A stretch of 63,215 bases of DNA, counting the filler, from Octopus bimaculoides (taxonomy: Eukaryota), in assembly GCF_001194135.2 (NCBI RefSeq). It is 6 parts of 6 records of this genome, joined end to end, with 100 filler letters (N's around TTAATTAATTAA, not from the genome) between each part and the next. Parts side by side here need not be neighbours in the genome. Positions count along the whole stretch, not along the records: positions 37,237 to 58,688 come from NC_068998.1; 5 more parts are not named here. One strand, given 5' to 3'. Below, piece after piece: positions 37,137 to 58,585 of this stretch (the stretch's first letter is position 1; each line of letters begins with the position of its first letter). Under the pieces are notes generated by a model. That model was given only the letters and a program-made list of their open reading frames with translations. It searched no databases and was not told where the DNA came from. Position numbers and translations under genes: made by a program.

Positions 37137-39149
37137 NNNNNNNNNNNNNNNNNNNNNNNNNNNNNNNNNNNNNNNNNNNNTTAATTAATTAANNNNNNNN
37201 NNNNNNNNNNNNNNNNNNNNNNNNNNNNNNNNNNNNTATATATATATATATATATGCTAATTACTGAATGTGTCAGTATTGCAATGGAATTACATACCTT
37301 ATATTTAATACCGCTGGAGAGTGGATGTGTCTCGTGTCCCTGAAAACAACGGGTTGATATATCGTTAAAATGAATTAATACATCAAGGTGCATCCACGAT
37401 TAAGTGTAGTACCATGACAAATATATTCAGGTCGATATAACCATGAAAAGTCGAATCTTTGCATCAACATCTGTTATAGTGGAAATATTCACGAAGAAAT
37501 AAATCTATCTTTTTCTATCTGGTTTGCAAGATTCTTTATGTGAATTCGTGTGTTGAAACAAATTTTGTTATGTTCAGGGAGAATCATCAAGATTTTTTTC
37601 TCTGAATGTTTAACTAAGTTAAACAAACAATAATGATGTAGGGAAACTGAAGCAGTGCTTGTGACAATAATTTTGGCATAATGACTCACCCTGTACACAA
37701 CAAAGTCTATTGTCTGTGTTTCATAAATTTTCTTGCGTTAAGTTATTTTTATTAGATCAATCGTCATTTATCACACGATGTTTTATATCACAGCCTCAGT
37801 ATAATATTGTTGTGCCATCATGAAGTTAAACGAAAGACATCAGTGATATATGATGCAGTATGGTTTATCGTCTTTTGTCGTTATCGCCAGATTTCGACCT
37901 GTGTTAGTTCGGAAACACCATTTAATTCTCAATATCATAGATACCCAATATGCTGATTTTTTTTTTTAGTGGTTTTATTGTATAAAAAATGACAATTGCT
38001 TCTATAGCTGAAACTACTAATTTCAGTTTGTAAAATATTCATTTCCTATCTCGTCGAAATCTTTACAATTAGGGTATGAAAGAAAAGCATATCAACGAAT
38101 ATAAATACACTTACGAGACACACATGTTCATATTGGAAAATAAAGAAAGTTGTGCAATAATTGTTTATTGCATGAAAACATCCTGGAAAATTCCTGTAGT
38201 TGCTGAAATCAAAAATTCAAACAAAAACAAAATTTTAGTCAATGATATTTAATTCATATAAATATATAACAACATGAACATGGAAATAGATAGTCTTTTA
38301 TTATTCATAGCAACTTATATATCTACATCGCACACCGTATTTAGGTTGCAGTTTTTTATATTCATATTTTATAAAACATATGCAACAATTGATGATGTGC
38401 AGTGTAAAAACATGTTGCGTTGCATAAGTAAACCTTATGTATGGTGGTCTCATGTAGTTATTTTTATTATGATATTAATCCTGGACAGAAAGGAGTTGTA
38501 TGTGTGAATCTAAAGGTAGAATATGTTGAATAAAATCATAATTAGCACATCATCCCTAATTTTCTTTTGACCAAAGTCGGAAACATTTCAACACTGCTTC
38601 GTGTATATCAGGAGTGTGGTTTTAATTTATTAACTAGGAAATAGAATAGTCAGAGGACCATACAAATACATTTTGCTGTCCAAGTTGGTTTAGTTCTGTC
38701 ACATTTTGAATAATATAAATATATATGAATGAAAGGAACTATTGAATTATATGTAGTATGATGATATGGAAATATACATGTCGCTAAATGTATCAATAAT
38801 TATTTATATGAATATTGAAAAGAAGAGCATATATACCTGCAGAATGAATTTGCATTTGTTATATTGTTGTCTATGGGACATCGACGTCTTATTGCTTCGT
38901 GGCATTCGTTTGACATCACAAATCCTAAAAATTTAATGTCCGATTTTAAGTATCTTTTTCTTTCACAAAATAATATAAAATGTTACGAAAGAGTCAGTAA
39001 AGTAAAATGTTAGTATATCATTACCAGACGTCTATTTAGCTAACCTGCCGTGCTTGTTTTTATTCCAGATTGAAGGAAACGGCCGTAATATTAATTTGAA
39101 ACCGCTCTGATGAACCCTGCTTGTCAGAGCTGTCTAACGTGTAGAAAGC

Positions 39150-39575
39150 AGTCAGGAATGAAGGCAGCTTGGAAGTTTGCTGTCCAATATATCTAAACAA
39201 AAACTTATGATCTGCTCCAGACTACTTATTGACTAACATGAATGAGATGAGCATCGTCTACGGCCAGACACAGGAGGCTCCACGTTGACATTGACAGGGA
39301 GTTCGGTCTCGCAATTTTCTCGATGAAGACTGTCGTGTGTGTATAAAATCAATAAACATACAGATTGGAGTTGGTGTAGAAACTCTAAACAGAATTATTT
39401 ACGAAGTGGGGACCATAAGAAGAATGTGTACAAAGTTTGTTATTGCCTGCTCAGTGACAAACAGAAGAAGTGTTGGCGATAGAAATGAGATGGTTAAGCT
39501 CATTACTTTCAGTTCAAGAGGCGATGACCTGTCACGAAGGCGCGATTTACCTTTATGATCCTGAAATCGAATTGT
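39150..39575 (+). mobile_element. Mariner transposase remnant
   Basis: DCRVCIKSINIQIGVGVETLNRII...RMCTKFV (HTH/linker region) followed by a YDPE motif at 39554-39565. Confidence 0.7.
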
Positions 39576-39894
39576 CCAGGCTCAAATGTCGAGTTATGAA
39601 TACATAACTGTATTCACAATTCAAATGCCGATAAAAGAACTATAAACAAAACAGAAACGCAAATAATTATTCGAACTGTCACTGGACTGTTCCATATGTA
39701 TTTTGACAAGTGCGGATTGCTAGTTACAATGAAATCTGAAATTAGTTGAGGTCTCACCGTAAACACCAACAGATGTACATGATTGATGATTTTACAGATG
39801 TATTTTATCTAAATTACCAAAAATTACCTTGAAATGCTAAAGAGTAAATTTTTTCAATAAAATCGCCATTGGCTTCAATCACGACCTCTAGACG

Positions 39895-40510
39895 ATTACG
39901 GAATCCCCTGCAACTCTTCTGGGAGGTCTCCTTGTTTACGTTGGTGAATGCTGCCACAATCCTTGGCTTCAATTCATCTCTGGTGTTTCAGGGAGGTTTA
40001 TCAGCCTCTTGTTCAACTGCGCTCCACATGTAATAATCAAGCGAGTTGTAGCCCGGGGAGTTAGATGGCCAGATGTTACGGGCAAGGTGGTCGCAGAAAT
40101 TCTCTGAAAACTATGAGTACGTTCTACTTTTATGGCATGGTGCAAAGTCCTGTTGGCATAGAGTCTTCTTCCAGCTGCCAACATTTTGACCTAGGGCAAC
40201 ACTACCTCCTCCAAGTACGATGTAGGCTTCCGTGTTGAGTCTGATGCAGTGTGCGAATGGAAACTTAACGGCGCCATTTCTGCTGATCACTAGTGATCAC
40301 TCCAAAATGATATTAATGGATGTTCGATATTTATCACTCTCGGTAAACGTACCCAGATTGCACTGTCCTCAGAATGTCATCTAAACACTCTGAAGACCTC
40401 GTATTGGAGCTTGCGGTGCAAATGCTGAGCAGTACAGAATGTCGTTTCGAAATTTGTGGCAGAGTGAATTACATCATGTTGCTGTATTTCTGACAAGGTG
40501 CGCCCAACTA
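39895..40510 (-). mobile_element. Tc1/mariner-superfamily (DD37D/maT-like) transposase remnant
   Basis: Minus strand reads QQDFAPCHKS...WPSNSPGYNSLDYYMW (WPPNSPDLNPLDY-type motif), with stop codons. Confidence 0.7.
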
Positions 40511-40645
40511 ACCTTACTATACTGTGTAGTCGACAAAATCAAAAGCAATTAATTCGCATGCGTGAAATAAAAAAATATAAAATGCAGACAATTTAGCCAT
40601 AACACGATGTATAAATATAACATACACACACACATACACACACAA

Positions 40646-40740
<95 letters not shown>

Positions 40741-41309
40741 CACACACACACCGTATGACGAAAGGGAGAAAGTGAAATATAGAGAAATAAATTGAAAGAG
40801 AGGGAGAGAGAGAGACTGATAGATACTCAGACAGACAGACTGACAGGTACATACGTTCCGGGAGAGAAATATGAAGTTTAAAAAACGCGTGGAAAGAATG
40901 AATGGAAACACATGTAGCAAATTTCAATTACATGGTCTTTCGTAGAATATACCTAAAAATTAAGAAGCAATTATCACAGGGATACTCACCTACAGTGACA
41001 AGTAAATCAAATATGAACAATTTCATCGTGAATACACAATTCTACGCTAAACCTTGATGTTGGAATAATGCCCAGTACGTAAATATACTGTGACAGATGC
41101 ATGCCGACCTCAAAGTTATGCATGTTATATATTATAGCTACCTTTTTTTATGGTCTTAAATAATTTATGTACAAAACAGAATCGTTAAATAAAGAACTAA
41201 TTACTATTTACAATTTCTAAAATGGTTAAAATGGGTCTGTAAAAAAACATTTGAGAAAAAACATTTATTTTTCATTTAGTGCAGTTTTAGTCGGCTATAA
41301 ATTGAATGT

Positions 41310-42059: not shown

Positions 42060-42835
42060 TGAAGTGGCACCCTGTCCTGCAGGTTATGTAACTGACAATT
42101 CCAATATTTGAAACTAGATCTAGGATTTTCCGGCTTCCCTGCAGGCAGGAGAGAGTCTCAACCTTTTCAGTTTCTCCTAGCTCCTGATAGGGCGCATTGT
42201 GTCAATATTTGCAATATAACTTCGCTTGATCGTCTCGAGTTCCGTACTTAATTTCACACTGTTTGGTGACCACAGTTGGGAGCAGTAATCAAGACGGCCG
42301 AGAATGAATGTCCTCCAGAGGACCATCGATATTTACTTTTCTCTTGTTTTGAAAGTTTGAACGATCCATCAGGCCAAGCGTCTGTATTTTATTGCAAACT
42401 TGATAATATGCACCTGGAAAGATGCGTCATTATTTATGCCGATACCCAGGTCAGGCACTGATTTTGGATCATGAATTAGAATCCCTCCTGGGAAAGTGTA
42501 TCATATCTACTTTTCCTTGAGCTTCCCATGTTGGTAGTGCAGGGCTTTGGAATTTTCCAGCATTACACTGCACGTTATTTTCCTCAGCTGACCTGTATAT
42601 TGCGTCTAACTCACGTTGTAGATACAAAATATCTCAGGGTCTCTGTATCCTCTGAGAGACTTAGGTATCATCTGCATAGATAGCAAGGGTAGTTACTTGA
42701 GCATCTAAGATCGTGCCACACAGGGAAACTATGAAATGTAGAGGCCCAGGACAGTGCTTTGCGGAACACCACTCATTATTTTTGTGTCCTTGGTAGTGGC
42801 TCCATTGACCACCACTACCTGACTTCTATCTTAGA
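42060..42835 (-). mobile_element. CR1/L2-type LINE RT remnant
   Basis: Minus strand reads VVVNGA...SGVPQSTVLG...IYADDT. Confidence 0.75.
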
Positions 42836-43845: not shown

Positions 43846-43926
43846 TCTACTTCGTGAATATCAGAGATAATTATGTTTATGAGACAATATCCTACAAGCA
43901 GCTTGACATTAAGGAAACTGCTCGGA

Positions 43927-43963
43927 ATGAAGGTTTTCATCTTTATTTCGCTTCTTATTGTTG
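43927..43963 (+). CDS. Gene A exon 1 (signal peptide MKVFIFISLLIV)
   Basis: 37 nt ending at donor G|GTACGT; homologous to 52769-52805. Confidence 0.82.
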
Positions 43964-46900
43964 GTACGTAACCAAGTATCTAATTTAAATGAACATTCTA
44001 TGGCTTATGTATCTAGTATGCCTAACGGATTCAGTCCAAAAATAACTATATACTCATTTATTAACATATCTCGTTATTTAATCACCTCCATTTCCCTACA
44101 CCTGACATTATTTGCTAACCCACAGTTCAATCTCACAAACTATGTTCTCAGTTTATACTTCTATTGAATTGCAAACATACACACTCAATTTTTTAAAAAC
44201 TTACCATCTTTCGGTTTATGAATCTGACCCTGTAGCTAAAAATATATCTGCAAACACAAAAGGATTGATGAGTAATGACATTTTTCGCAGCATCCGCTTC
44301 GGGTACATGCATATTGAATAACAATATTACCAACAATAACGTGTAATTTTGCACAATATTTTATATGACGTTACGAGAGAAATTCGAGGTTAGGAATTTG
44401 AGAAAACATATATATCTTGTTTTATTGCAATGTAAGAGTTAAAACAGTGTGATTTTTGCATACATATAATTATCTAGGTTTAACTTTCAAAGTTCCAAAA
44501 TAGACAGGAGCGTTATATACACCACAAAACACGCACCCACGGAGATAGATGGGATGTACCGGGCATTCTCTGGGACAACGTGTTTTCACCTTATACGTCT
44601 TACGTCAACGGGATGAAGCGTTGCAAGTTATGCATAGCTGAACGCTCTGGAATCGTAAATGACTTGCTCGAATCAGGGAGCATCCTTACCTCCAGAACGG
44701 AGATTTTGAAGCCATCTTTACATTTCAGGATATTCCTGCCAGTGTTTTGAAGCCCGAAACATGGCGACAACCCGGAAGTCGATAGCCAATGGCAAAAGGA
44801 GATAATCTTGTTGTTTACTTTTGTAGGGAAGCTTTCCCCCTCCATTTTTGAATAGGTATTAGGCCAATAGCTTTCGGGGTCTAATGATACGCCATGTATG
44901 TACGTATGTATGTATGTATATATTATGTATGTATGAATGAGTGAATGTATGTTATCTTATTTTTGTAAATTTGTCGTTAAAGGTAATTCAGCATATCAGA
45001 TCGTTCATATGTTTTTAAGGATTCAAGTAAAAGAGATTACAAAGATTCTAGTTACAGGGTTATTTTAATTCCAGATTTTAGTTGGTCGTGTGGATTGAAT
45101 CATTCGTTATACTACCTGACGAATGGAGAGAAAATGAACTCTGATGTCGTTTATATTATTCCTGGTTATATGCAGTAAACGATATCCATTTATTCACATA
45201 AATTTAGAACAATGCAACGCGGAGGTTGAAGTTCTCTCGTATATTCTCTATGCGTATACTCATTACAAACTCGAGAGATACAATATTTAATGCTGAATCT
45301 ATATTAAATAATATTTTACGAGTTGTAATACAAGAAATTAATATTTAAAATCATTTTTAAAATTCGCATATATTAATCAACTACAGAATAATAAATATGT
45401 GGCGACGTAGCCAAACGTCAAGGGATCGCTTTGTCAAAAAGGTTTTCATATCAAGATGAAGTAAAGGACTAAACAACTTCTTTATTGCATACAGAAGTTA
45501 AAAAGCAACTGAACTTCGACAAAATTTCGATAATTTCTTGCCTTCTAAATAGTCATGTCTATAATCTTTTTAATTACTATGTAACTAGATCTTCATATAC
45601 CTACCAAGGCAATTAAATAAAATACTCAGCTTTCTTATCACTGAATATACTAACTATATTCCACTGAGGATTACATTTTTATGCTATGTTTTATATCTAT
45701 GAGCTACTAACATTAATCTAAAATTTTAGGTGCTGATGGAGCATCGACGTGCACTGTAAAAGCAAATGCTTATTGCCCGCAGGCGAAGATGTCTTTTAAT
45801 GAAATGGTACTAGCGGAAGACTTCTGCAAGTATAACGAATTCAATTCTACAATTAATTTTTAACGCACGCACGCACAGACATATACAAACAGGCTTCTTT
45901 TTGTTTCCGTCTACGAAATCCACCCTCAAAGGTTTGGTCGGCAAGATGCTACAGTAGAACAGATTTCCACAACTTTTCTTGCAGTTGGACTGAACCTGGA
46001 ACTGCGTGGTTGGAAAGCAACATTCACACCACACAACCACGCCTGCACCTCCTGTTTATTTCTGTGATCCTTTCTGTAGAAGAGCCTAGCCTCGAAACGT
46101 AAAAGACTTTCTCATTTCCCGAGCGCAAATCTAATACGTATGTTTGTTGTTTACATACCCGTCTTCGTCTTTTGCTTTTTGTAAATTCTCACTATATATA
46201 TAAATATATATATATATATATGTATGTATAAATATGTTTATTTCCCCATTTTATTTAACATTTGTATGGAAAATATACTTATATTTCGTTTTATTGTAAT
46301 TATCTTTAATTCGTGAGGTTTTAGTGGCTTAATTCCTACATCACTACATTCTGCAAATATCTCCCAATTTTTAAAAATATTCTCCTACAAGAAAAATACG
46401 TGTCCATAATTGATATGTAACCCCATCAACCTGATTTTCTCTGCTCCGTGACGTTACTAGTGGCATAGGTTGGTGTGTTTTTGTACGCATTGTCTATAGC
46501 GATAACATTGTCTATAGCGATAACATCCGCGACATTTGCTCAAAAAAAAGATCTTCCTCATTTTAGTGCACTTGAACCTGTTCAATATAATATTCTCGAC
46601 TGGATCTTCATTTCTCCTACTCAAACCATAAAATCCATAAGAGATTTCATTTTCAAACATAGAAGTGTATATGACAAGAACACTGAAAGACACAAGCATT
46701 ACATGTATTACACTTTGTTTTCAATTGCTATTGTTCAGGATTTACTGGAGCTATGAACCATGTTTAGACATGATCGACGATTACTGTGCTGGATATTTTG
46801 ATTACTACTTCAGGAACAGGTGTCCGGTAATATATATTTCATATTTCATACCATGAACCAAACAACAATATGAGTGATAATTTGATTTGTTCAAAGCAAA

Positions 46901-49900
46901 ATAAAAGTTCTGCCCCCACCTCCCTCGACATCCCTTCCATTTTCTTTTAAATACATACACGCTTATACACACTCACACACACACAGATAACACAGACACA
47001 CATAGTTTATTTGTGCAATCGTCTACACCTATGTTAAAACGGTTGGACAATGAAAACTACAACTGTAAAATTCACCCACTATTGTTTATGTGCTTATTGG
47101 TTTTTTCCCCCGAAGACATCTTGGGGTTCAATGACAAAAATGCGTGTCATATGATTTGCTTAATTTCCAGAAAACAGGACACTATTTGGAAATCATGGGA
47201 CTACAGAACGATCAAAGACATTATACATATTTTGTTTCATCTTCTCGTATAAAAATGCTTGGTGTAACAGAAACCTTGTTCGGCGAACAGGAATTTATCT
47301 TTTATTCTAAAATATTTATTTAAACTTTAAAAATTTCGCTTTACATCATATTCAATTTTTGTTTCAGAAGTTATCTGAAAAGAATTCTGGCAACCAAAAT
47401 GAAGTACGTAACATTATGGGAAAATACGGGTTTAATTCTATCGTGATGTCCTAATAAAACTCCNNNNNNNNNNNNNNNNNNNNNNNNNNNNNNNNNNNNN
47501 NNNNNNNNNNNNNNNNNNNNNNNNNNNNNNNNNNNNNNNNNNNNNNNNNNNNNNNNNNNNNNNNNNNNNNNNNNNNNNNNNNNNNNNNNNNNNNNNNNNN
47601 NNNNNNNNNNNNNNNNNNNNNNNNNNNNNNNNNNNNNNNNNNNNNNNNNNNNNNNNNNNNNNNNNNNNNNNNNNNNNNNNNNNNNNNNNNNNNNNNNNNN
47701 NNNNNNNNNNNNNNNNNNNNNNNNNNNNNNNNNNNNNNNNNNNNNNNNNNNNNNNNNNNNNNNNNNNNNNNNNNNNNNNNNNNNNNNNNNNNNNNNNNNN
47801 NNNNNNNNNNNNNNNNNNNNNNNNNNNNNNNNNNNNNNNNNNNNNNNNNNNNNNNNNNNNNNNNNNNNNNNNNNNNNNNNNNNNNNNNNNNNNNNNNNNN
47901 NNNNNNNNNNNNNNNNNNNNNNNNNNNNNNNNNNNNNNNNNNNNNNNNNNNNNNNNNNNNNNNNNNNNNNNNNNNNNNNNNNNNNNNNNNNNNNNNNNNN
48001 NNNNNTTTACATGAAATAAATTCGAATACAAAAATATTTTTCTGTTCTATAACACAAAATAGATAAGCATACGAAGTTTGAAAGTCTTTCGGTACCAAAA
48101 ACACTACGTAAAACATTAATGAAAAATGTGGCCCCCGTTTTAAAAAAGATCCGGAATTTATCTTTTATTTTAAAATATTTATTTAAATTTTAAAAAATTC
48201 ACTTTACGTTATTTTAAATTTTTGTTTCAGAATTTACATAAAAAGAAGCTTTCTATAGGCAAAATAAAGTACGTAACATTATGGGAAAATACGGGTTTAA
48301 TTCTATCGTGATGTCCTAATAAAACTCCTAAGAATTTTGCTCAGTGTGTCAACACTAGCAGACTCTTGATAATGATGGACAATGCGATATCTCCTATTCA
48401 ATGTCTATGATAAAGTACAGAGCTGCGATATGTGTGTGTTATTGTAGTTTTGTGATCATTATTGACGATATCCTAGGAAATGTGTTTTATTCAGGAATTT
48501 CAACCATGTTTCGTGGTCTGCTACCACAACAGCTCCTTTATAGGATCCAGTTAGCTCAAGACATCATCAGGAGGAACCACGTCCAGTTTCGGCCCCTACT
48601 CATCTACCGTTTTGACGTGGCNNNNNNNNNNNNNNNNNNNNNNNNNNNNNNNNNNNCCCCCCCCCCCTTTCGGAGGTGTCTTCAGCTCTGGTGTTGGATG
48701 CATGTCTTCTTTCTTCTATTCCCTGGCCTCTTCGATGCAGCATCAACGAATGTCACAGATAACACAGACACACATAGTTTATTTGTGCAATCGTCTCCAC
48801 CTATGTTAAAACGGTTGGACAATGAAAACTGTTGAATTCACCGACTGTTTTTTATGTGCTTATTGGTTTTTTCCCCCGAAGACATCTTGGGGTTCAATGA
48901 CATAAATGCGTGTCATATGATTTGCTTAATTTCCAGAAAACAGGACACTATTTGGAAATCATGGGACTACAGAACGATCAAAGACATTATACATATTTTG
49001 TTTCATCTTCTCGTATAAAAATGTTTGGTGTAACAGAAACCTTGTTCGGCGAACAAGAATTTATCTTTTATTTTAAAATATTTATTTAAACTTTAAAAAT
49101 TTCGCTTTACATCATATTCAATTTTTGTTTCAGAAGTTATCTGAAAAGAATTCTGGCAACCAAAATGAAGTACGTAACATTATGGGAAAATACGGGTTTA
49201 ATTCTATCGTGATGTACTAATAAAACTCTTAAGAATTTTGCTCAGTGTGTCAACACTAGCAGACACTTGATAATGATGGACAATGCAATATCTCCTATTC
49301 AATGTCTATGATAAAGTACAGATCTGCGATATGTGTGTGTTATTGTAGTTTTGTGATCATTATTGACGATATCATAGGAAATGTGTTTTATTCAAATCCT
49401 TTTAATGCTTCACTAACTGTAGTGGAGGTGTAATACTGCAAAATGTTTAATATTTATGTGTATTATATTCAGTATTCAATATGGGTTAGCTGCATTAATC
49501 TATAATTTTGAAAACAATTGAAATGAATGCAACATTCTATGAATATGCAATGGAAAGTTATAAAAATTATCGTAAACAAATTATTATTATCAGTAGCATT
49601 AATGTTATCATCTTTATCAATACTAACGACGGACTCAATAGTCGAAGACGACGTACGGGTCTTCAGCTTTCGCTGAAAGACCTGTATAAATGATTCGTAT
49701 ATAGTAATCAAATTTATGTGTTGTGCATTACATCACGTCATGCATGAAACAGACGTTGTCACAACAGTTGCATGGTGTACAACACGTGTAAAGCAACACC
49801 AGTTGATGTTTTGCTCAAGAGCACACCGCGCCTCAAATCTAGGAATTAAAACCAGGACCTCGCGATAGGCGATAATATTAATAATAATTATTTCTCCTTA

Positions 49901-50124
49901 ATCCCTTCCCTCAAAGTGTTTTTCGCATATATCATCGCAAATACGATTAATAATTTAAAGCAGTCTATCAAATTTATCGAATGTAGATTAATATATCATG
50001 CGTAGTTTAAAAAAAAGACTCCTATAAATAATGTTAACTAACATTCTTTTCTTATTTTTTACAGGTGATATTGGTAAATGTGTTGATTACTGCAAGTTTA
50101 ATTACGTTAATTCAGTGTATGTAA
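43927..50124 (+). CDS. Gene A: spliced gene for a small secreted six-cysteine protein with a hydrophobic C-terminal tail (putative GPI anchor), ~106 aa
   Basis: Hand-assembled exons 43927-43963, 45730-45829, 46739-46826, 47368-47403 (or its duplicate 49134-49169) and 50065-50124. All introns are GT-AG with compatible phases 1,2,0,0. Translation: MKVFIFISLLIVGADGASTCTVKANAYCPQAKMSFNEMVLAEDFCKIYWSYEPCLDMIDDYCAGYFDYYFRNRCPKLSEKNSGNQNEVILVNVLITASLITLIQCM*. Paralogue B has the same phases and the same lengths for exons 1, 2, 3 and 5. AATAAA at 50172-50177. Confidence 0.82.
44550..44760 (+). mobile_element. Penelope-like GIY-YIG endonuclease C-terminal remnant in gene A intron 1
   Basis: FSPYTSYVNGMKRCKLCIAERSGIVNDLLESGSILTSRTEIL resembles the PLE motif PY...KRCxLCxxEK...LNxRxE. 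Confidence 0.55.
45730..45829 (+). CDS. Gene A exon 2 (ADGASTCTVKANAYCPQAKMSFNEMVLAEDFC)
   Basis: Acceptor TTTTAG|, donor AA|GTATAA, 100 nt; same length and phase as 53849-53948. Confidence 0.85.
46070..46105 (+). ncRNA. Degenerate minimal hammerhead motif, second family, in gene A intron 2 (repeat ~46055-46200)
   Basis: CTTT CTGTAGA A GAGC CTAG CCTC GAAA CGTA AAAG; same repeat as 7395-7570. Confidence 0.5.
46739..46826 (+). CDS. Gene A exon 3 (IYWSYEPCLDMIDDYCAGYFDYYFRNRCP)
   Basis: Acceptor TTGTTCAG|, donor CCG|GTAATA, 88 nt; same length and phase as 56843-56930. Confidence 0.85.
47368..47403 (+). CDS. Gene A exon 4 copy a (KLSEKNSGNQNE)
   Basis: Acceptor TTTTTGTTTCAG|, donor GAA|GTACGT, 36 nt, phase 0-0; positional homologue of gene B exon 57412-57459. 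Confidence 0.7.
48231..48268 (+). pseudogene. Gene A exon 4 copy b, diverged 38-nt variant (frameshifting if included)
   Basis: Same acceptor TTTTTGTTTCAG| and donor GTACGTAACATTATGGG context as copies a and c, but 38 nt and diverged in sequence. Confidence 0.55.
49134..49169 (+). CDS. Gene A exon 4 copy c (KLSEKNSGNQNE)
   Basis: Identical 36-nt exon inside a near-identical duplicated block (48754-49228 vs 46982-47463). Confidence 0.65.
50065..50124 (+). CDS. Gene A exon 5 (hydrophobic tail VILVNVLITASLITLIQCM*)
   Basis: Strong acceptor TTCTTTTCTTATTTTTTACAG|; homologous to 58526-58585, with the stop at the same codon (20th). Confidence 0.72.
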   Translation: MILVNVLITASLITLIQCM

Positions 50125-50722
50125 ATATATATATAAATTGGGTTGGTGCATAATTATTGCAGCTTGCTTTCAATAAAGACCATATCAACATTTAAGAAAG
50201 AAACATCTTTAAATAACGTTCTGACCGTCTGCCAAGCAAATGGGGAGCAGTAATCGAAGTAAATGGTGAATATGCTCCGAATAATCATTTAAAGATGTAT
50301 TTTGTTGCATATTGTTATTGTTTTTGTTGAATAAAATTTGTTGAATAAAAGTCGCAATAAATGTCCTATAATATATAAATGTATATATATACTTTATTAA
50401 TAAAGCTGTGTCATCAAGAAAAGTGTTACTCAGAGTTTCACATTCCTGTTCAACAGGAAGTTAAAACTCTGAGTAACAGTTTTTGCGATGACTTTGAAAA
50501 TATTTTCTTAAAGCATATTACCCTACATCCGGCATTCGAGTACTATTTTTTCAGCCCCTTTTTACATTTATGTGCTTACTCTGGTATATATACATAGATA
50601 ACAGCAAGTATTGCGTAAATTTTTACTTAGATCTTCTGCGTAAAATGGCGTTGCTACCACAATTGTAACTGATCATTAAAGACCTCTTAAAATATTTTTG
50701 TCTTATTCTCGGCATTATATAT

Positions 50723-50753
<31 letters not shown>

Positions 50754-50923
50754 CATAGGAAATTGAGTAGGGTAGCATTCACTACCAAATAAGTAACTTC
50801 CAACGAGGCAGCTTTCCTACTATAATATCTCTTCGCAAAAGATATTTACCATAAAGATGGATCCAGAACATTATTTACATTATTTACATTTGACGGATAT
50901 TTGTCCTCATCTTGTTTGTTGTT

Positions 50924-50969
50924 AACACAACGCATCGGCTGACACATCGTCCAGCCTTCATCAGGTGTC
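50924..50969 (-). ncRNA. Degenerate hammerhead ribozyme motif, same family (GAAA->GAUG)
   Basis: Reverse complement reads GACAC CTGATGA A GGCTG GACGATGTGT CAGCC GATG CGTT GTGTT. Confidence 0.6.
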
Positions 50970-51029
50970 TTGGGGAAATTTTCGAAACCTGCGTTCTCAT
51001 TCCTTACCTATTTTTCGATGTTGTTGTTG

Positions 51030-51102
<73 letters not shown>

Positions 51103-51161
51103 GTCCGTGGGACATATGGCGTAGTGTTTAAGAGCGCGGGCTACTAACATCAAGTTTCCGA

Positions 51162-51220
<59 letters not shown>

Positions 51221-51424
51221 TGATAAGTAATAATAAATACATAATTTACCTGTGAATTTGCGTGTGTAAACTGGGAATGCATACAACGAGTTTCTCTGCC
51301 CCAGGTGTACGGAAAACACTTGGCGAGAAATGGAAGAAAATTTGAAGAAAGAAAAAAATAATAATAATAACAATGACATCGAAAATACCTTAGGAATGAG
51401 AACTCAGGTTCGAAATTTCCCCAA

Positions 51425-51470
51425 GACACCTGATGAAGGCTGGACGGTGTATCAGCCGAAGCGTTGTGTT
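51425..51470 (+). ncRNA. Hammerhead ribozyme motif, same family, GAAA->GAAG core change
   Basis: GACAC CTGATGA A GGCTG GACGGTGTAT CAGCC GAAG CGTT GTGTT. Confidence 0.65.
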
Positions 51471-52671
51471 AACAACAAACAAGATGAGGACAAATATCTG
51501 TCATATGTGAATAACGTAAATAATATACATAAGTCCTCATCTCTTAAATATAGGAAAGTATGGATCCAGAAGTATTTGTCATTCCTTCTTCGCCGACGAC
51601 CTGAGATTCAATCGACAGCATAAAAAAAAATTGGAACTTATATGACCCAAGTTTCTACAGACGTTCGGATGAAATTTGGTGATTCCAAATGCGCATTTTA
51701 AACAATAAATTGCGGGAGAGTTCTGCACTCCTTGGCACATATAGCACTGAGAATTTTATCAATAGAACTTCTAGTCATGTGATAACTATGGGTATCTTGG
51801 ACAAGAGAATCATGGCAAATATGAATGACCCATGCATAAAGAAAGGGCCAACAATGAATAATGATTTCAGGAATTAATCTCCGGAGAATAACGAAAATAT
51901 GTCTATCAGAACTCTCGACTTATAAAATATTGTGGGAATTTTACTTGTTATATCTTGAAAAGGAAAGTCGACCCTCTTCTGCAGTCGGAAGAAATACTGT
52001 TTAGCGTGTTGCCCGGCACACTAACAATACTCACAACTAAACACAAATATAAAATGCATTTTATTGCACTGATGAGAATATGGATTAACAATTTCGCTGG
52101 ATTCCATTTTATAATGGAAGTTGCAATGCTTCATACAAGTAGTCATTGTATTATAGCTAACATTCTAGATTGATGGGTACTTTGATAATGAAACAAATCT
52201 GACACTACACATATCGAAACATGAGCTGTACGAATTTGAAAAAAAACAAAAAACAAAAAACAAGACTATGTAACATATCAATCTAGATGAGAAGTGGTGG
52301 AGAAGTAGCATGTGAGAGCACCTTAATCGTTATCAGTTCGGCCTGTTGAAGAATAATATAACACATGTGCTGGAATTCTTCAAGAATTATTCGACTTATA
52401 TAACTGCCAGCACCAGAACAACGTTCCACAAAGCGTAGTTAGAGAGCTTCTCCAGTATATGCGTATATAATTCACTAACAGAGAAAGACTGGTTATTTTG
52501 AAAAAGTTTTACATAACAATTTCAGTGAAAGAGTTCTTTTCTTCATTTCTTCAAATGATGTATGATGTATGTAAGCTTTTGGCATTCTGTCAATATTTTA
52601 TTACAATATTTGACGCAATTCCAATTCAGAGCAAATATGCTTTGTTAGTATCCCCTGGTTAGCCGTAGGCA

Positions 52672-52752
52672 AACATGTCAAATATATTATCTCTTTCAAC
52701 CTCATATATATAAAATTCGTAATTTTTGGTTGCGAGAGAATACATCTGTGTC
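52672..52752 (+). promoter_or_regulatory. Putative core promoter of gene B (TATATAAAA at 52707-52715)
   Basis: TATA-like box ~55 nt upstream of the ATG, in a block conserved with the gene A upstream region. Confidence 0.55.
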
Positions 52753-52768
52753 CATCAAATTGTCCAGA

Positions 52769-52805
52769 ATGAAGGTTTTCATGTTCATGTCGCTTCTTGT
52801 GGTTG
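52769..52805 (+). CDS. Gene B exon 1 (signal peptide [12 protein letters not shown])
   Basis: 37 nt, donor G|GTATGT. Confidence 0.82.
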
Positions 52806-52963
52806 GTATGTACAATTTACATAATTTCAATGAAAATTCTATCAATAATGTATCTAGTAAGCCTAAAAAATTCGATACACTCACACAGATATACATATAC
52901 AATTATATATGCATATCTATATATATACATATATAAGTATGTATGTATGGATGAATATATTTA

Positions 52964-53004
<41 letters not shown>

Positions 53005-56000
53005 ATATGCATATACATATATACATACATATATACATACATATATACTTTGTGTAAATTTTATGAAAAATAAATTAAAGTGCTCTGTATTTATAAACCT
53101 TGACGTACAAGTTTATAGATTTCGTAATATTGCGGTTCACCAAACAACGCATCTCTTTCCGTCATAACTTTTTTCAGTTTTGCTAAGGGCGCCAGTTTAC
53201 TTCGTTCTTTTCCACTGATATAGAAAATATTTCATATCAGGACTGATATACAAAATATATTACATCACAAAAAATGAATATTTGATGTGTAGATATTTTT
53301 ATTTTATTATATTCCTTTTTTTAATTATCCATTTACAATCTATAAATAAATTTATATGTGCAATTTTAGCATAAATGAATGAAATCATAATTTCACTACA
53401 TATAATTTGTGCATATGGCGTTTAGAAGTGTAATGACTCTACTAATTCTGCAACGACGCTAAGACTTTATTCTGAATTATCAAAAGTTTGTCATAAATGT
53501 GTTTCAATAATCCAGTATAAAAGGCAGCGAACTGGTTGAATGATATCGTGCTGCACAAAATGTTCAGCATCTTTTTTTTCTTCCGGGTTTCTGATCTGAA
53601 ATACCGCTAGTCTCCATTTTACACTTCTTTTTATGATCGATAAAATGCCTGCATAAAATTCATGATAGATAGATACATCAGAAAACTCGTCTGTAAATTG
53701 ATATTGAGATGCCAATCGCTGAAAGTAAATATGGTCGTCAGTTTTCATATCACTAATCACATAAAATAAATTCCACTTAGGAGTATATATTTATGGGATG
53801 TCCTATGAGTTTACACCAATGAACTTCTAATATTAATTTATATTTTAGGTGTTGATCTGGCCAAGCTTTGCAGTAAAGAAGCAAACGCACCTTGCAAAGA
53901 GGCGAAAATGTCTTTTAATGACATGTTCTTATCGGACAACTTCTGCAAGTATATGTGATATGGATTTAATTGTAATATTGTTATCACAAATGTGTATATC
54001 TGTATACGTATACATGCATGCATACACATACATAGAGTCATACATACATATAAATCTTAATATATAAATCTGAAATTGTGTGTTTGTGTGAAACCTTTTT
54101 GAATGTTTATAGAAATCCACATTTTCCACTTTTTCGTAAAATTTTTTACATCAATGGAATTTTCTCGATGTGAACTTTCCAGTGCATTAATTAGATTTTT
54201 AAAATTCCGTTTACTTTGTGTGATTTAAGTGAGATTTGGCTGTTGTTTCTAGCAACTTTTATATTTCATCCCTGCTACCTGGAACGCCATTCTTACACAC
54301 GCGCTCAACATAGAAATATAGAGAGTAAAAGTAAAAGAGGGAGAAGAAGAGAGACAGAAAGTGATACATACAACGTCATGGATTAAACTTTCATCTCAGT
54401 ATTCTTTACCTATTTTTCATAACATAGATACGTAAAGACACACACAACCACACATACATGACCTGTGACAACAATATACACATTGCTCTCAATCTCTATT
54501 CATTTCTCCCCCTCTTCCTCTCTCGCTCTCTCAAACGTATACACGTGCAAGTAAACAATCATTCACATCGTGGTATATTTACGAAACATTGATGGCATAA
54601 CTACAGAGTTGTATCCCCCAAATTTGGAAGGTCATAACTTTCATAAAAATGAATATTTTTTAATGAAATTTTCTATGCATATATTATTTATTATGTAGAT
54701 TCCAAATATACAAAGATTTTCGGTGAAAGTGTTTTAGAAGGAGGTGGGGTACAATATTCGGAAATTCAACTTAAATTCCTCTTAACTTCCAGGAAAATGA
54801 ATATTTTGTCATGAAATTTTGTACAAATNNNNNNNNNNNNNNNNNNNNNNNNNNNNNNNNNNNNNNNNNNNNNNNNNNNNNNNNNNNNNNNNNNNNNNNN
54901 NNNNNNNNNNNNNNNNNNNNNNNNNNNNNNNNNNNNNNNNNNNNNNNNNNNNNNNNNNNNNNNNNNNNNNNNNNNNNNNNNNNNNNNNNNNNNNNNNNNN
55001 NNNNNNNNNNNNNNNNNNNNNNNNNNNNNNNNNNNNNNNNNNNNNNNNNNNNNNNNNNNNNNNNNNNNNNNNNNNNNNNNNNNNNNNNNNNNNNNNNNNN
55101 NNNNNNNNNNNNNNNNNNNNNNNNNNNNNNNNNNNNNNNNNNNNNNNNNNNNNNNNNNNNNNNNNNNNNNNNNNNNNNNNNNNNNNNNNNNNNNNNNNNN
55201 NNNNNNNNNNNNNNNNNNNNNNNNNNNNNNNNNNNNNNNNNNNNNNNNNNNNNNNNNNNNNNNNNNNNNNNNNNNNNNNNNNNNNNNNNNNNNNNNNNNN
55301 NNNNNNNNNNNNNNNNNNNNNNNNNNNNNNNNNNNNNNNNNNNNNNNNNNNNNNNNNNNNNNNNNNNNNNNNNNNNNNNNNNNNNNNNNNNNNNNNNNNN
55401 NNNNNNNNNNNNNNNNNNNNNNNNNNNNNNNNNNNNNNNNNNNNNNNNNNNNNNNNNNNNNNNNNNNNNNNNNNNNNNNNNNNNNNNNNNNNNNNNNNNN
55501 NNNNNNNNNNNNNNNNNNNNNAGCAACAGATCGCCAGCAATTGCTTCATCAGAAATTGCCGTCCTAGCTCCTGCTAAAAGGGATTACCCTGCTATGTATA
55601 ATCAGGGCAGCGCAAAAAGTTGTTTTGCACAAGCATTTCTATAGCCAATTACACGGATGAAATTTACGTATGCTTAATAATTTTACGCAAAACAGCCTTC
55701 AGACTTACCCTATTAATTTCATCGTCTTTTGAATTATGAACATATTTACATCATAAGGGTTTTTTCGTTGTAAGGCTTTCTTTTTTAGTTGATTTTCAGC
55801 TAGCAAGACTTATCGTAGATGGCATAATAAGTCACACCCGGACAAGGTCTGGTTATACTGCTAATACTTATATAAAGATACATGACACACGTCTCTGTTT
55901 ATCTACCTATCTATCAAACTCTCGTTCACTCTTTATATATATACATATATATACACACATACATGCACACTCATACACACACATACATGAACACTCATAC

Positions 56001-57901
56001 ACACACATACATATACAGTGTGCGTAAGTTATTTCCAGACAGACTTATGTTTATAAAAAAAATATATATTATAAAATGAAATAATATTATTTATGAAAGA
56101 TTGCTATGAGTATAAAGATAAACATTCTTTTCTATAATGTTATTCAATAAAGCTTCAACAACTGCTTCTATATGCTATCTAACTCATGTAAATGCTCAAA
56201 TCAAGTGGTCCTGGTTCAGTTTGGACATTACTCTGACATTACTATGGTATTATGGGCATGTTCATTGACTTCTCTCTGAGAAACACTCCACATTTGATAG
56301 TGCATTTCTTTGAGAAACAAATAGTTACTACGTGAGTCTATCCCAATTTCATGGAGCAGGCATCTATCCCCATTTCATGGAGCTGTTAATATGCATATAC
56401 TCTACTTAAATTTAACTATTACTAATTAGTGCATTATTAATCGATTAATTCCAAGTCCAACGGGCTCTGCAAATGTCTTCCAATTTATATTCACAGAACA
56501 TGACTGATGTTTACTGTGTCCTTAACATGATATGCATCCGCGCTTTCACATTTATTTTCAGCCCCAGCATGTTATACGTAGCGTGACTTAATGTTTTTGT
56601 GTACGCTTTGGTTATAACGAGAATATCACTTCCAAGTCATTTACGAAAGAATGATCTTTCCTATTTTCGTACACATGGAAAGTTAAATATAGCATACTCG
56701 ACTTTATAATTATTCTTGATCAAAACATGAAATTCAGGAGAGATTTGACTTTTAAACATAATCAGAGAAAACATCGGACAACAAATACATCAAATAATGT
56801 TTACGTATTAAATACTGCTTTCTTTTTATTTTACTTGTCCAGTTTGTACCCGAGGTATAGACCATGCTTGAAGAGGACAAGGGAGACATGCGCTGGGTAT
56901 TTTGTGTACTTCTACCATCACAGGTGTCCGGTAATATATATTCATTATTTCATTAAAAATCGAACACTTACCATGAGCTAAAGAAATTTCAAAATTTAAA
57001 AACGCAATAAATTCCAAAATTAATAAGAACGACGGGAACGTATTTGCCAACGTAATATATATACTCGTTTATTTGTGCGATTGTGATCAAGATTACTAAA
57101 AACGTATGGCCAAGGGGAAAATGCATTGTATAAATAAAATGGTTGTATCCATTGGATATTTTCCTTTGTCATCTTCAGGGTCTATGACATGAACATATGT
57201 CATAACATGTTCTTTATTTTCTGAATGCAGGACACTATTGAGAAGCCATGGAATTAGAGAAGGGTCAAAGATTAACTAAATGTCTGCTTTAACAATAATC
57301 CTGGTCAGAAAATATGAATATATGTTTATCTTAATATATTAATATAAATTTCGAAGACGTGTTATGCATTAAAATTTCACACTATATAATATCCAATTTC
57401 TAAAATTTCAGGTTCATGTTACAACTAGTCATAGCGAAAGCGATTACCACCGAAATGAGGTACGTAATCGTAGCGTAAACTATTCGTTTAATATAATCAA
57501 GATATCCTAATAAAACCGCTGAAAATAATATTCAATATCTCTACCCTAGTATAGAATTAATACTGAAGGAGAATGCAAAATCTATTTTTAATTGCGTACG
57601 ATATACTGCAGAGCTACCGTAGTGTTGATTGTGTGTCATTGTTGCTTTACGGCCATTATTGACGATATTTCTTACCATGTATTATCGGAAATATCTTCTC
57701 TTTTGTTCAAATACATTCATGCTACATCAACAAATATAGTGGAGATCTAATAATTCAAAAATTGTAATATATATCTGCATTATATTCGGCATTCAATATG
57801 ATGTACGATTGCTGCATTAAGTCATACATTTTACTGCAATTAAAATGGTAACATGTTTTTCACGTAGAACAAAAATTTATGACCGTTAAGATGAACAAGT
57901 G

Positions 57902-57954
<53 letters not shown>

Positions 57955-58585
57955 GATTATTATTATTATTGTTTTTGTTGTTGTTGTTATTATTATTATC
58001 ATCATAATTATTATTCATTCGCAACACAGTGTAGGTAAACATGCACCGGAGTCTTCCGTCAAGTGTCAAGTCCCAAGATGGACATCAGACACATAACACT
58101 TTCCTTAAGATGTGTGCTGTGCCCAATACGGCTGCATTTTGCAAGACATCAATCTTGCATGGGTTTTCCAGTTGCCTTAAGAAGTCTTGAAATTTCAATG
58201 AGATTTAGCTCAGCGCTCCGATCACCGCTTCTATCACTTTTACCCTGTCGCTTTTACCCTTTCAAGTTGGAGAATTTGGTGATTCTTTTCAACCACAATA
58301 TTAATGGGATGTTATCACTGATACTTATAAGATTTAACATTCGATAATACTACTAATACAAATGCCATATCACCATACTTTTGGCACGTATTAACGCAAA
58401 TGTCTGTGATGAATTACACGATTTAGGAATGTTATCGTATATGGTATAATATATTATGTGAAATTTAAGGAAACTCCTAACACTATGAAAAGTTAAATAA
58501 GATAACATTATTTTATATTTTGCAGGTGACATTGATAAATCAGCTGATTATTGCAAGTCTAATTACATTATGTAAGCATATATAG
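52769..58585 (+). CDS. Gene B: tandem paralogue of gene A, small secreted six-cysteine protein with a hydrophobic tail, ~110 aa
   Basis: Exons 52769-52805, 53849-53948, 56843-56930, 57412-57459 and 58526-58585; GT-AG introns, phases 1,2,0,0. Translation: [110 protein letters not shown]. Confidence 0.82.
53849..53948 (+). CDS. Gene B exon 2 ([32 protein letters not shown])
   Basis: Acceptor TATTTTAG|, donor AA|GTATAT, 100 nt. Confidence 0.85.
54600..54828. mobile_element. Probable non-autonomous DNA transposon end in gene B intron 2
   Basis: TACAGAGTTGTATCCCCC start with internally repeated AAAATGAATATTTT...ATGAAATTTT motif; runs into a gap. Confidence 0.4.
56843..56930 (+). CDS. Gene B exon 3 ([29 protein letters not shown])
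   Basis: Acceptor TTTTACTTGTCCAG|, donor CCG|GTAATA, 88 nt. Confidence 0.85.
57412..57459 (+). CDS. Gene B exon 4 ([16 protein letters not shown])
   Basis: Acceptor ATTTCAG|, donor GAG|GTACGT, 48 nt, phase 0-0; ends in NE like gene A exon 4. Confidence 0.72.
57897..58345 (-). mobile_element. 3' end of a Dong/R4-like element with (TAA)n tail, in gene B intron 4
   Basis: Minus strand reads VIGAL...[17 protein letters not shown], a typical R4/Dong C-terminus, followed by a short UTR and (AAT)n. Confidence 0.7.
58526..58585 (+). CDS. Gene B exon 5 ([19 protein letters not shown])
   Basis: Acceptor TTTTATATTTTGCAG|; homologous to 50065-50124. An internal T|GTAAGC donor at 58572 could continue the gene elsewhere. 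Confidence 0.7.
   Translation: MTLINQLIIASLITLCKHI

Follow-up and report, generated by a model that had tools for sequence, protein, structure and literature searches.

The stretch of DNA considered here (the window, 63,215 nucleotides (nt) at its full length) comes from Octopus bimaculoides (RefSeq assembly GCF_001194135.2), and our analysis concerns the piece at window positions 37237–58688, which derives from record NC_068998.1, has a G+C content of 33% and contains three internal runs of N. Two neighbouring genes on the plus strand of this piece, LOC128249899 (gene 1) and LOC128249910 (gene 2), each encode a small protein with six cysteines. The family to which they belong has at least 20 genes, arrayed in tandem along chromosome CM046618.1 across a region of at least 0.5 Mb. 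An earlier note on the same DNA had described the two as a hidden pair of spliced genes, by implication unannotated. Both genes are real, as their models match RefSeq proteins, but they are not hidden: RefSeq already holds both as uncharacterized proteins.

When the five exons of gene 2 were joined, they gave a 333-nt open reading frame (ORF) of 110 amino acids (aa), with AG/GT at every junction. Exon 1 (52769–52805, 37 nt) is followed by exon 2 (53849–53948, 100 nt), which carries cysteines 1–3, and by exon 3 (56843–56930, 88 nt), which carries cysteines 4–6. The polar stalk is encoded by exon 4 (57412–57459, 48 nt), and the hydrophobic tail and the stop codon by exon 5 (58526–58585, 60 nt). 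The translated product is RefSeq XP_052830462.1, 'uncharacterized protein LOC128249910', with 100% identity over 100% of the length. A microsatellite, (ATT)38, was noted in intron 4 of this gene at 57902–58015.

The gene 1 model is 106 aa long, again with AG/GT junctions, and its exons measure 37, 100, 88, 36 and 60 nt. The signal peptide starts in exon 1 (43927–43963, 37 nt, MKVFIFISLLIVG), cysteines 1–3 lie in exon 2 (45730–45829, 100 nt) and cysteines 4–6 in exon 3 (46739–46826, 88 nt), while the hydrophobic tail VILVNVLITASLITLIQCM and the stop codon are in exon 5 (50065–50124, 60 nt). Exon joining thus confirmed the canonical five-exon structure that the earlier note had given for both genes. 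The other shared features that it had listed were also borne out, namely the intron phases 1,2,0,0, the exon lengths 37/100/88/x/60, the cysteine spacing C-x7-C-x16-C-x8-C-x7-C-x11-C and a stop at the same position. The two proteins are 51% identical, and the ratio of nonsynonymous to synonymous substitution rates (dN/dS) between the genes is about 0.7. At the nucleotide level the exons are 64–86% identical, whereas the 100-nt flanks reach only 28–44%. Because the exons stand so far above their flanks, and because the same exon and cysteine pattern recurs at no fewer than 20 other loci, the resemblance goes beyond chance. The interval between genes 1 and 2 contains the microsatellites (TTA)23 and then (TAA)24, at 51033–51236.

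The fourth exon of gene 1 proved to be repeated, a feature that the earlier inventory had missed. A unit of about 0.88 kb bearing this exon is present three times at window positions 46982–49394, around two of the N gaps. Copy A of the exon (47368–47403, 36 nt, KLSEKNSGNQNE) is intact, and so is copy C (49134–49169, 36 nt), which encodes the same peptide; copy B (48231–48268, 38 nt) is degenerate and would shift the reading frame, so we regard it as a pseudo-exon. Unit C shares about 96.5% identity with unit A, unit B is 86–92% identical to the other two, and this divergence favours a real tandem duplication over an assembly artefact. Since gap 1 lies at a unit boundary, the number of exon-4 copies is uncertain, and the 542 N may hide further ones. 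Six RefSeq isoforms are annotated for LOC128249899, and they contain either one or both of the intact copies. In isoforms X1–X4 the exon-4 peptide KLSEKNSGNQNE occurs twice, copies A and C being used together. The exon is preceded by a CAGAAG tandem acceptor of the NAGNAG type, at 47362–47370 for copy A and at 49128–49136 for copy C, which explains why some RefSeq isoforms have one lysine more than others.

RefSeq isoform X5 (124 aa) equals our 106-aa model with 18 additional upstream residues, beginning at an in-frame ATG at 43873. Throughout the family the conserved start is a leader of the form MK(x)…, whereas the N-terminal extensions of several RefSeq models are not conserved. For this reason we prefer the downstream ATG, which, judged by this conservation, is more likely the true start.

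From window position 42769 to its end, the piece is 100% identical, gaps included, to O. bimaculoides CM046618.1 (GCA_001194135.2), with window position 42769 corresponding to chromosome position 49,672,959. The first N gap (47464–48005, 542 N) is in the intron region of gene 1 and starts 60 nt past the donor of exon-4 copy A; the second (48622–48656) is also in gene 1, between two copies of the repeated intronic unit; the third (54829–55521) falls within intron 2 of gene 2 (53949–56842). As all three are intronic, no exon or reading frame enters a gap, and the continuity of the frames therefore depends on splicing and not on gap length. Scans of the piece for Rfam families, tRNAs and tandem repeats yielded nothing relevant except microsatellites, and the ORFs of at least 90 aa in it were of low complexity or spanned gaps. 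The order of accessions hints, as a lead only, that CM046618.1 might be chromosome 17, which in O. bimaculoides is reported to be the sex chromosome Z (PMC10925132).

A third member of the family, which we call gene 0 and which had also escaped the earlier note, was found in the same piece by a pattern scan and manual reading. It occupies 37298–41026 on the minus strand, head-to-head with gene 1, and the ATGs of the two genes are about 2.9 kb apart. On this strand exon 1 (40990–41026, 37 nt, MKLFIFDLLVTVG) is followed by exon 2 (38837–38924, 88 nt, C-x7-C-x12-C), exon 3 (38115–38202, 88 nt, C-x7-C-x11-C) and exon 4 (37298–37339, 42 nt, the stalk); exon 5 falls outside the piece, past its left end. 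The exon lengths 37/88/88/42 keep the family phases, and AG/GT is present at all junctions. Intron 1 of this gene contains a microsatellite, (AC)66, at 40620–40751, about 240 nt from exon 1. Two more copies lie within 10 kb downstream of the window, at chromosome positions 49.691–49.698 Mb: a fourth gene, whose exons measure 37, 100 and 88 nt, and a fifth, for which the fetched DNA covers exon 2 only. The fourth and fifth copies were not found among annotated proteins.

To define the family more widely, an exhaustive HMMER search was run with a profile built from the proteins of genes 1 and 2 as the query. It returned 14 further relatives with E-values from 4.6e-7 to 8e-4, mostly 100–126 aa long: 12 'uncharacterized proteins' of O. 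bimaculoides encoded on the same chromosome, one hypothetical protein of Octopus vulgaris and one fragment from assembled reads. Word-indexed protein searches, made with each protein and with a profile of three paralogues, returned only genes 1 and 2 themselves. The members that could be mapped lie at 49.30–49.81 Mb of CM046618.1, on both strands, and their unnamed neighbours (104–150 aa) have the same exon patterns. In a scan of seven fetched loci, exon-2 and exon-3 matches came from more than 16 genes. The suggestion that the pair might be part of a longer array was therefore correct, as the array counts no fewer than 20 copies and extends for 0.5 Mb or more. The family signature is C-x7-C-x(12-16)-C-x8-C-x(6-7)-C-x11-C, in which the six cysteines are the only invariant residues, and aromatic positions between the cysteines are conserved. 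We also found genomic contigs of assembled reads from SRR11869384, SRR11869390 and SRR11869391 that are collinear with intron 1 and exon 2 of gene 1 at 68–73% nucleotide identity; a conserved block within the intron corresponds to window positions 45177–45309. Such collinearity at this level of identity shows that a fairly distant relative has an orthologue.

That the proteins belong to no recognised family held up, as none reached the threshold in Pfam or in the search of PDB sequences. In the PDB sequence search with a single protein, PHD-finger and phycoerythrin entries were the only ones to appear, and they were set aside as chance matches. A search of the literature by LOC, XP, UniProt and chromosome accessions and by description found nothing on the family. 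It appears to be undescribed, having no Pfam entry and no paper that we could find.

The architecture of the precursors was examined by hydropathy and sequence inspection of 17 models, two of them C-terminally incomplete, and the assignments are heuristic. All full-length members consist of four parts: a hydrophobic leader of about 16–19 residues, a domain some 58 residues long, a stalk of 10–25 residues in which Ser, Thr, Asn and Gly are abundant, and a hydrophobic stretch that ends 0–12 residues before the C-terminus in every one of them. The leader, polar stalk and hydrophobic tail that had been noted in the pair are thus conserved across the family. Precursors of glycosylphosphatidylinositol (GPI)-anchored proteins enter the endoplasmic reticulum (ER), where the C-terminal tail is then exchanged for the GPI anchor. 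By the same heuristic, the octopus proteins have the form of such precursors, with a signal peptide, a polar spacer containing small residues suitable for an ω site and a hydrophobic segment at the extreme C-terminus. Since the stalk and tail are shaped like a GPI-attachment signal, a GPI anchor is the most likely route to the membrane, and the proteins are probably lipid-anchored on the cell surface.

The structure of the domain alone (59 aa) was modelled by AlphaFold2 from 15 family sequences, giving a predicted local distance difference test score (pLDDT) of 86.9 and a mostly helical model, with helices at residues 2–7, 19–24, 28–42 and 44–57. A model of the full-length protein made from two sequences had a pLDDT of 70, and Foldseek found only noise with it. 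The domain is predicted to be a small helical bundle, and the six cysteines would pair into three disulfides.

Taken as a whole, we consider it likely that these are genuine coding genes and that they constitute an octopus-lineage family of GPI-anchored, six-cysteine helical surface proteins. The interpretation in the earlier note, that of a lineage-specific family of small six-cysteine proteins, secreted or GPI-anchored, which grew by tandem duplication, is thereby supported. The precursor of about 105 aa would enter the ER by means of a cleavable signal peptide of about 16–19 aa, split over exons 1 and 2. The mature domain of about 58 aa, encoded by exons 2 and 3, would then fold as a helical bundle locked by the three disulfides, and the exon-5 tail, which follows the Ser/Thr/Asn/Gly stalk of exon 4, would be replaced by the GPI anchor, so that the anchored product would be displayed on the outer leaflet of the plasma membrane. 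The conserved aromatic positions are presumably core residues, and it is elsewhere that the paralogues diverge. Fast divergence outside the cysteine and aromatic positions, together with the size of the array, suggests a set of diversified binding modules, and both surface display and a binding role would follow from this scheme as a repertoire at the cell surface. Two points count against this interpretation: the GPI assignment is a heuristic one in which the ω site is left undefined, and the existence of RefSeq isoform models is the sole support for expression.

Among the alternatives, the one that fares best, unlikely as it is, takes the C-terminal stretch as a true transmembrane anchor, which would make these type I membrane proteins that have 0–12 residues on the cytoplasmic side. 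The hydrophobic tails are 12–19 residues long, a few members have up to 10–12 residues past the hydrophobic peak, and the GPI reading is a heuristic one. Most tails, however, stop 0–6 residues past the peak, many of them include Asn, Gln, Thr or Ser and would be short to cross a bilayer, and the stalk directly before them has the abundance of Ser, Asn and Gly that is seen at ω sites.

About as unlikely, and by our estimate marginally more so, is the view that the proteins are soluble, secreted cysteine-rich effectors of a pheromone, antimicrobial or salivary/venom type, in which the hydrophobic exon would encode a propeptide or be missing from the mature protein. Effector families are typically small, disulfide-rich, tandemly duplicated and fast-evolving, as these genes are (dN/dS about 0.7), and one O. 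vulgaris model of 80 aa ends without a tail. That model looks truncated, however, and the length, position and hydrophobicity of the tail exon are conserved in every full-length member, in each of which the tail ends at the C-terminus; moreover, Pfam gave no toxin or pheromone family.

The idea that the genes are degenerate or non-functional duplicates, products of gene prediction from which no protein is expressed, can draw on the high dN/dS and on the finding of the exact gene 2 protein on the genome record only and on no assembled read set, but we consider it very improbable in view of the intact ORFs, the uniformly canonical splice sites and conserved exon phases, the six cysteines that are invariant over more than 20 paralogues at 20–50% identity, the orthologous exon kept in a species with a DNA identity of only about 70%, and the six RefSeq isoforms, some pairs of which differ only at the CAGAAG acceptor, as isoforms of this sort are, we infer, normally derived by the pipeline from aligned transcripts.

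Among known systems the closest is the N-terminal domain of the repulsive guidance molecules (RGMs: RGMA, RGMB/DRAGON and RGMC/hemojuvelin), of which the octopus module may be a distant stand-alone relative. In Pfam, where no family reached threshold, RGM_N (PF06535) was the only recurrent match. The window proteins matched it with E-values of 0.012 and 0.007 at full length and about 0.003 for the domain alone, and 7 of the 16 members matched it, the best with an E-value of 0.002. When the family profile was compared with all PDB sequences, only RGM N-domains were returned (RGMA and RGMB chains, one entry being also named RGMC; E-values 0.05–0.19), in an alignment that spans D-x-E-F-C-x8-C-x7-C. 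The RGMB and RGMA N-domain sequences were taken from this output. Alignment of the family with the RGM N-domain by hhalign gave a P-value of 2.8e-4 over 33 columns. Finally, RGMB scored 18.4 bits against a hidden Markov model of 19 family sequences, a value reached by 2 of 3000 shuffled sequences in which the cysteines were kept fixed and by none of 3000 fully shuffled ones. The similarity therefore goes beyond the spacing of the cysteines.

In RGMs, which are GPI-anchored, the N-domain folds as a bundle of three helices with three disulfides and is the part that binds ligands of the BMP/GDF type (PMC7354924). RGMs and the octopus proteins have in common a signal peptide and a GPI-type C-terminus, a small six-cysteine, all-helical N-module (helical by prediction in the octopus) and a central F-C-x8-C-x7-C of equal spacing and similar residues. 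Several results weigh against the relationship. The RGM_N scores of 16–19 bits, the best being 16.3–18.7, are below the gathering threshold of 24.2; the match is local, covering about 24–33 residues at profile positions of about 21–52 out of 70; and the hhalign probability was only 41%. The outer loops also differ, RGMB having C-x4-C-x22-C-x8-C-x7-C-x21-C whereas the octopus loops are x7, x16 and x11. When Foldseek was run with the domain model against the PDB, there was no match at all, RGM chains included, so that this comparison gives the fold no name and RGM no confirmation; helical domains as small as these, at about 60 residues, are a weak point of Foldseek. The octopus proteins are, in addition, without the von Willebrand D-like region, the GDPH autocleavage site and the neogenin-binding C-domain of RGMs: only about 30–37 residues of stalk and tail follow the six-cysteine domain, and neither a Pfam RGM_C match nor a GDPH motif was found. 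Large tandem arrays are formed by the octopus genes and not by RGMs. In view of the local sub-threshold match, the loop differences, the missing C-terminal region and the negative Foldseek result, we do not assign the family to the RGMs. The module could nevertheless be distantly related to the RGM N-domain, although in our estimate this is the less probable outcome. More speculative, and in our opinion unlikely, is that the array represents a cephalopod-specific radiation of stand-alone RGM-N-like modules, that is, GPI-anchored mini co-receptors or decoys that would bind BMP/GDF ligands via helix 2, the linker and helix 3, with at least 20 paralogues tuning TGF-β-superfamily signalling cell by cell.

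Octopus genomes contain lineage-specific expansions of cell-surface recognition genes, the protocadherins being an example. To these expansions the present array, apparently undescribed, would add no fewer than 20 small and fast-diverging surface proteins, probably with a GPI anchor. If the weak link to the RGM N-domain is true, the family would be the first case of this BMP-binding module standing alone and expanding as a multigene family, and it would provide a testable handle on the diversification of signalling or cell recognition in cephalopods. If the link is false, the family is still a clean new domain family worth naming, one among many uncharacterised lineage-specific families. Within the many lineage-specific expansions of cephalopods, the size of the array and the lead to the RGM N-domain raise its value somewhat.

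Two other systems resemble the octopus proteins. The Plasmodium 6-Cys (s48/45) proteins share with them the 'six-cysteine' name and frequent GPI anchoring, but they are unrelated and were rejected as an identity: about 120 aa form a β-sandwich in their domain, and the cysteine pattern is another, whereas the octopus domain has 58 aa and is predicted to be helical, and no match to this family was seen in Pfam at E ≤10. The Ly6/uPAR proteins were likewise rejected, as they are β-structured, have 8–10 cysteines and end in a C-terminal CCxxxxCN, in contrast to the six cysteines and predicted helices of the octopus domain, which gave no UPAR_LY6 match. In their general design, however, they are the best functional analogue, with precursors of about 100 aa, a signal peptide, a disulfide-rich domain of 60–80 aa and a GPI signal, and with genes that are fast-evolving and often lie in tandem clusters. 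The octopus array is thus a variant within a known kind, that of tandemly arrayed genes for surface proteins that are small, disulfide-rich and, in the octopus probably, GPI-anchored; genes 1 and 2 are annotated but unnamed.

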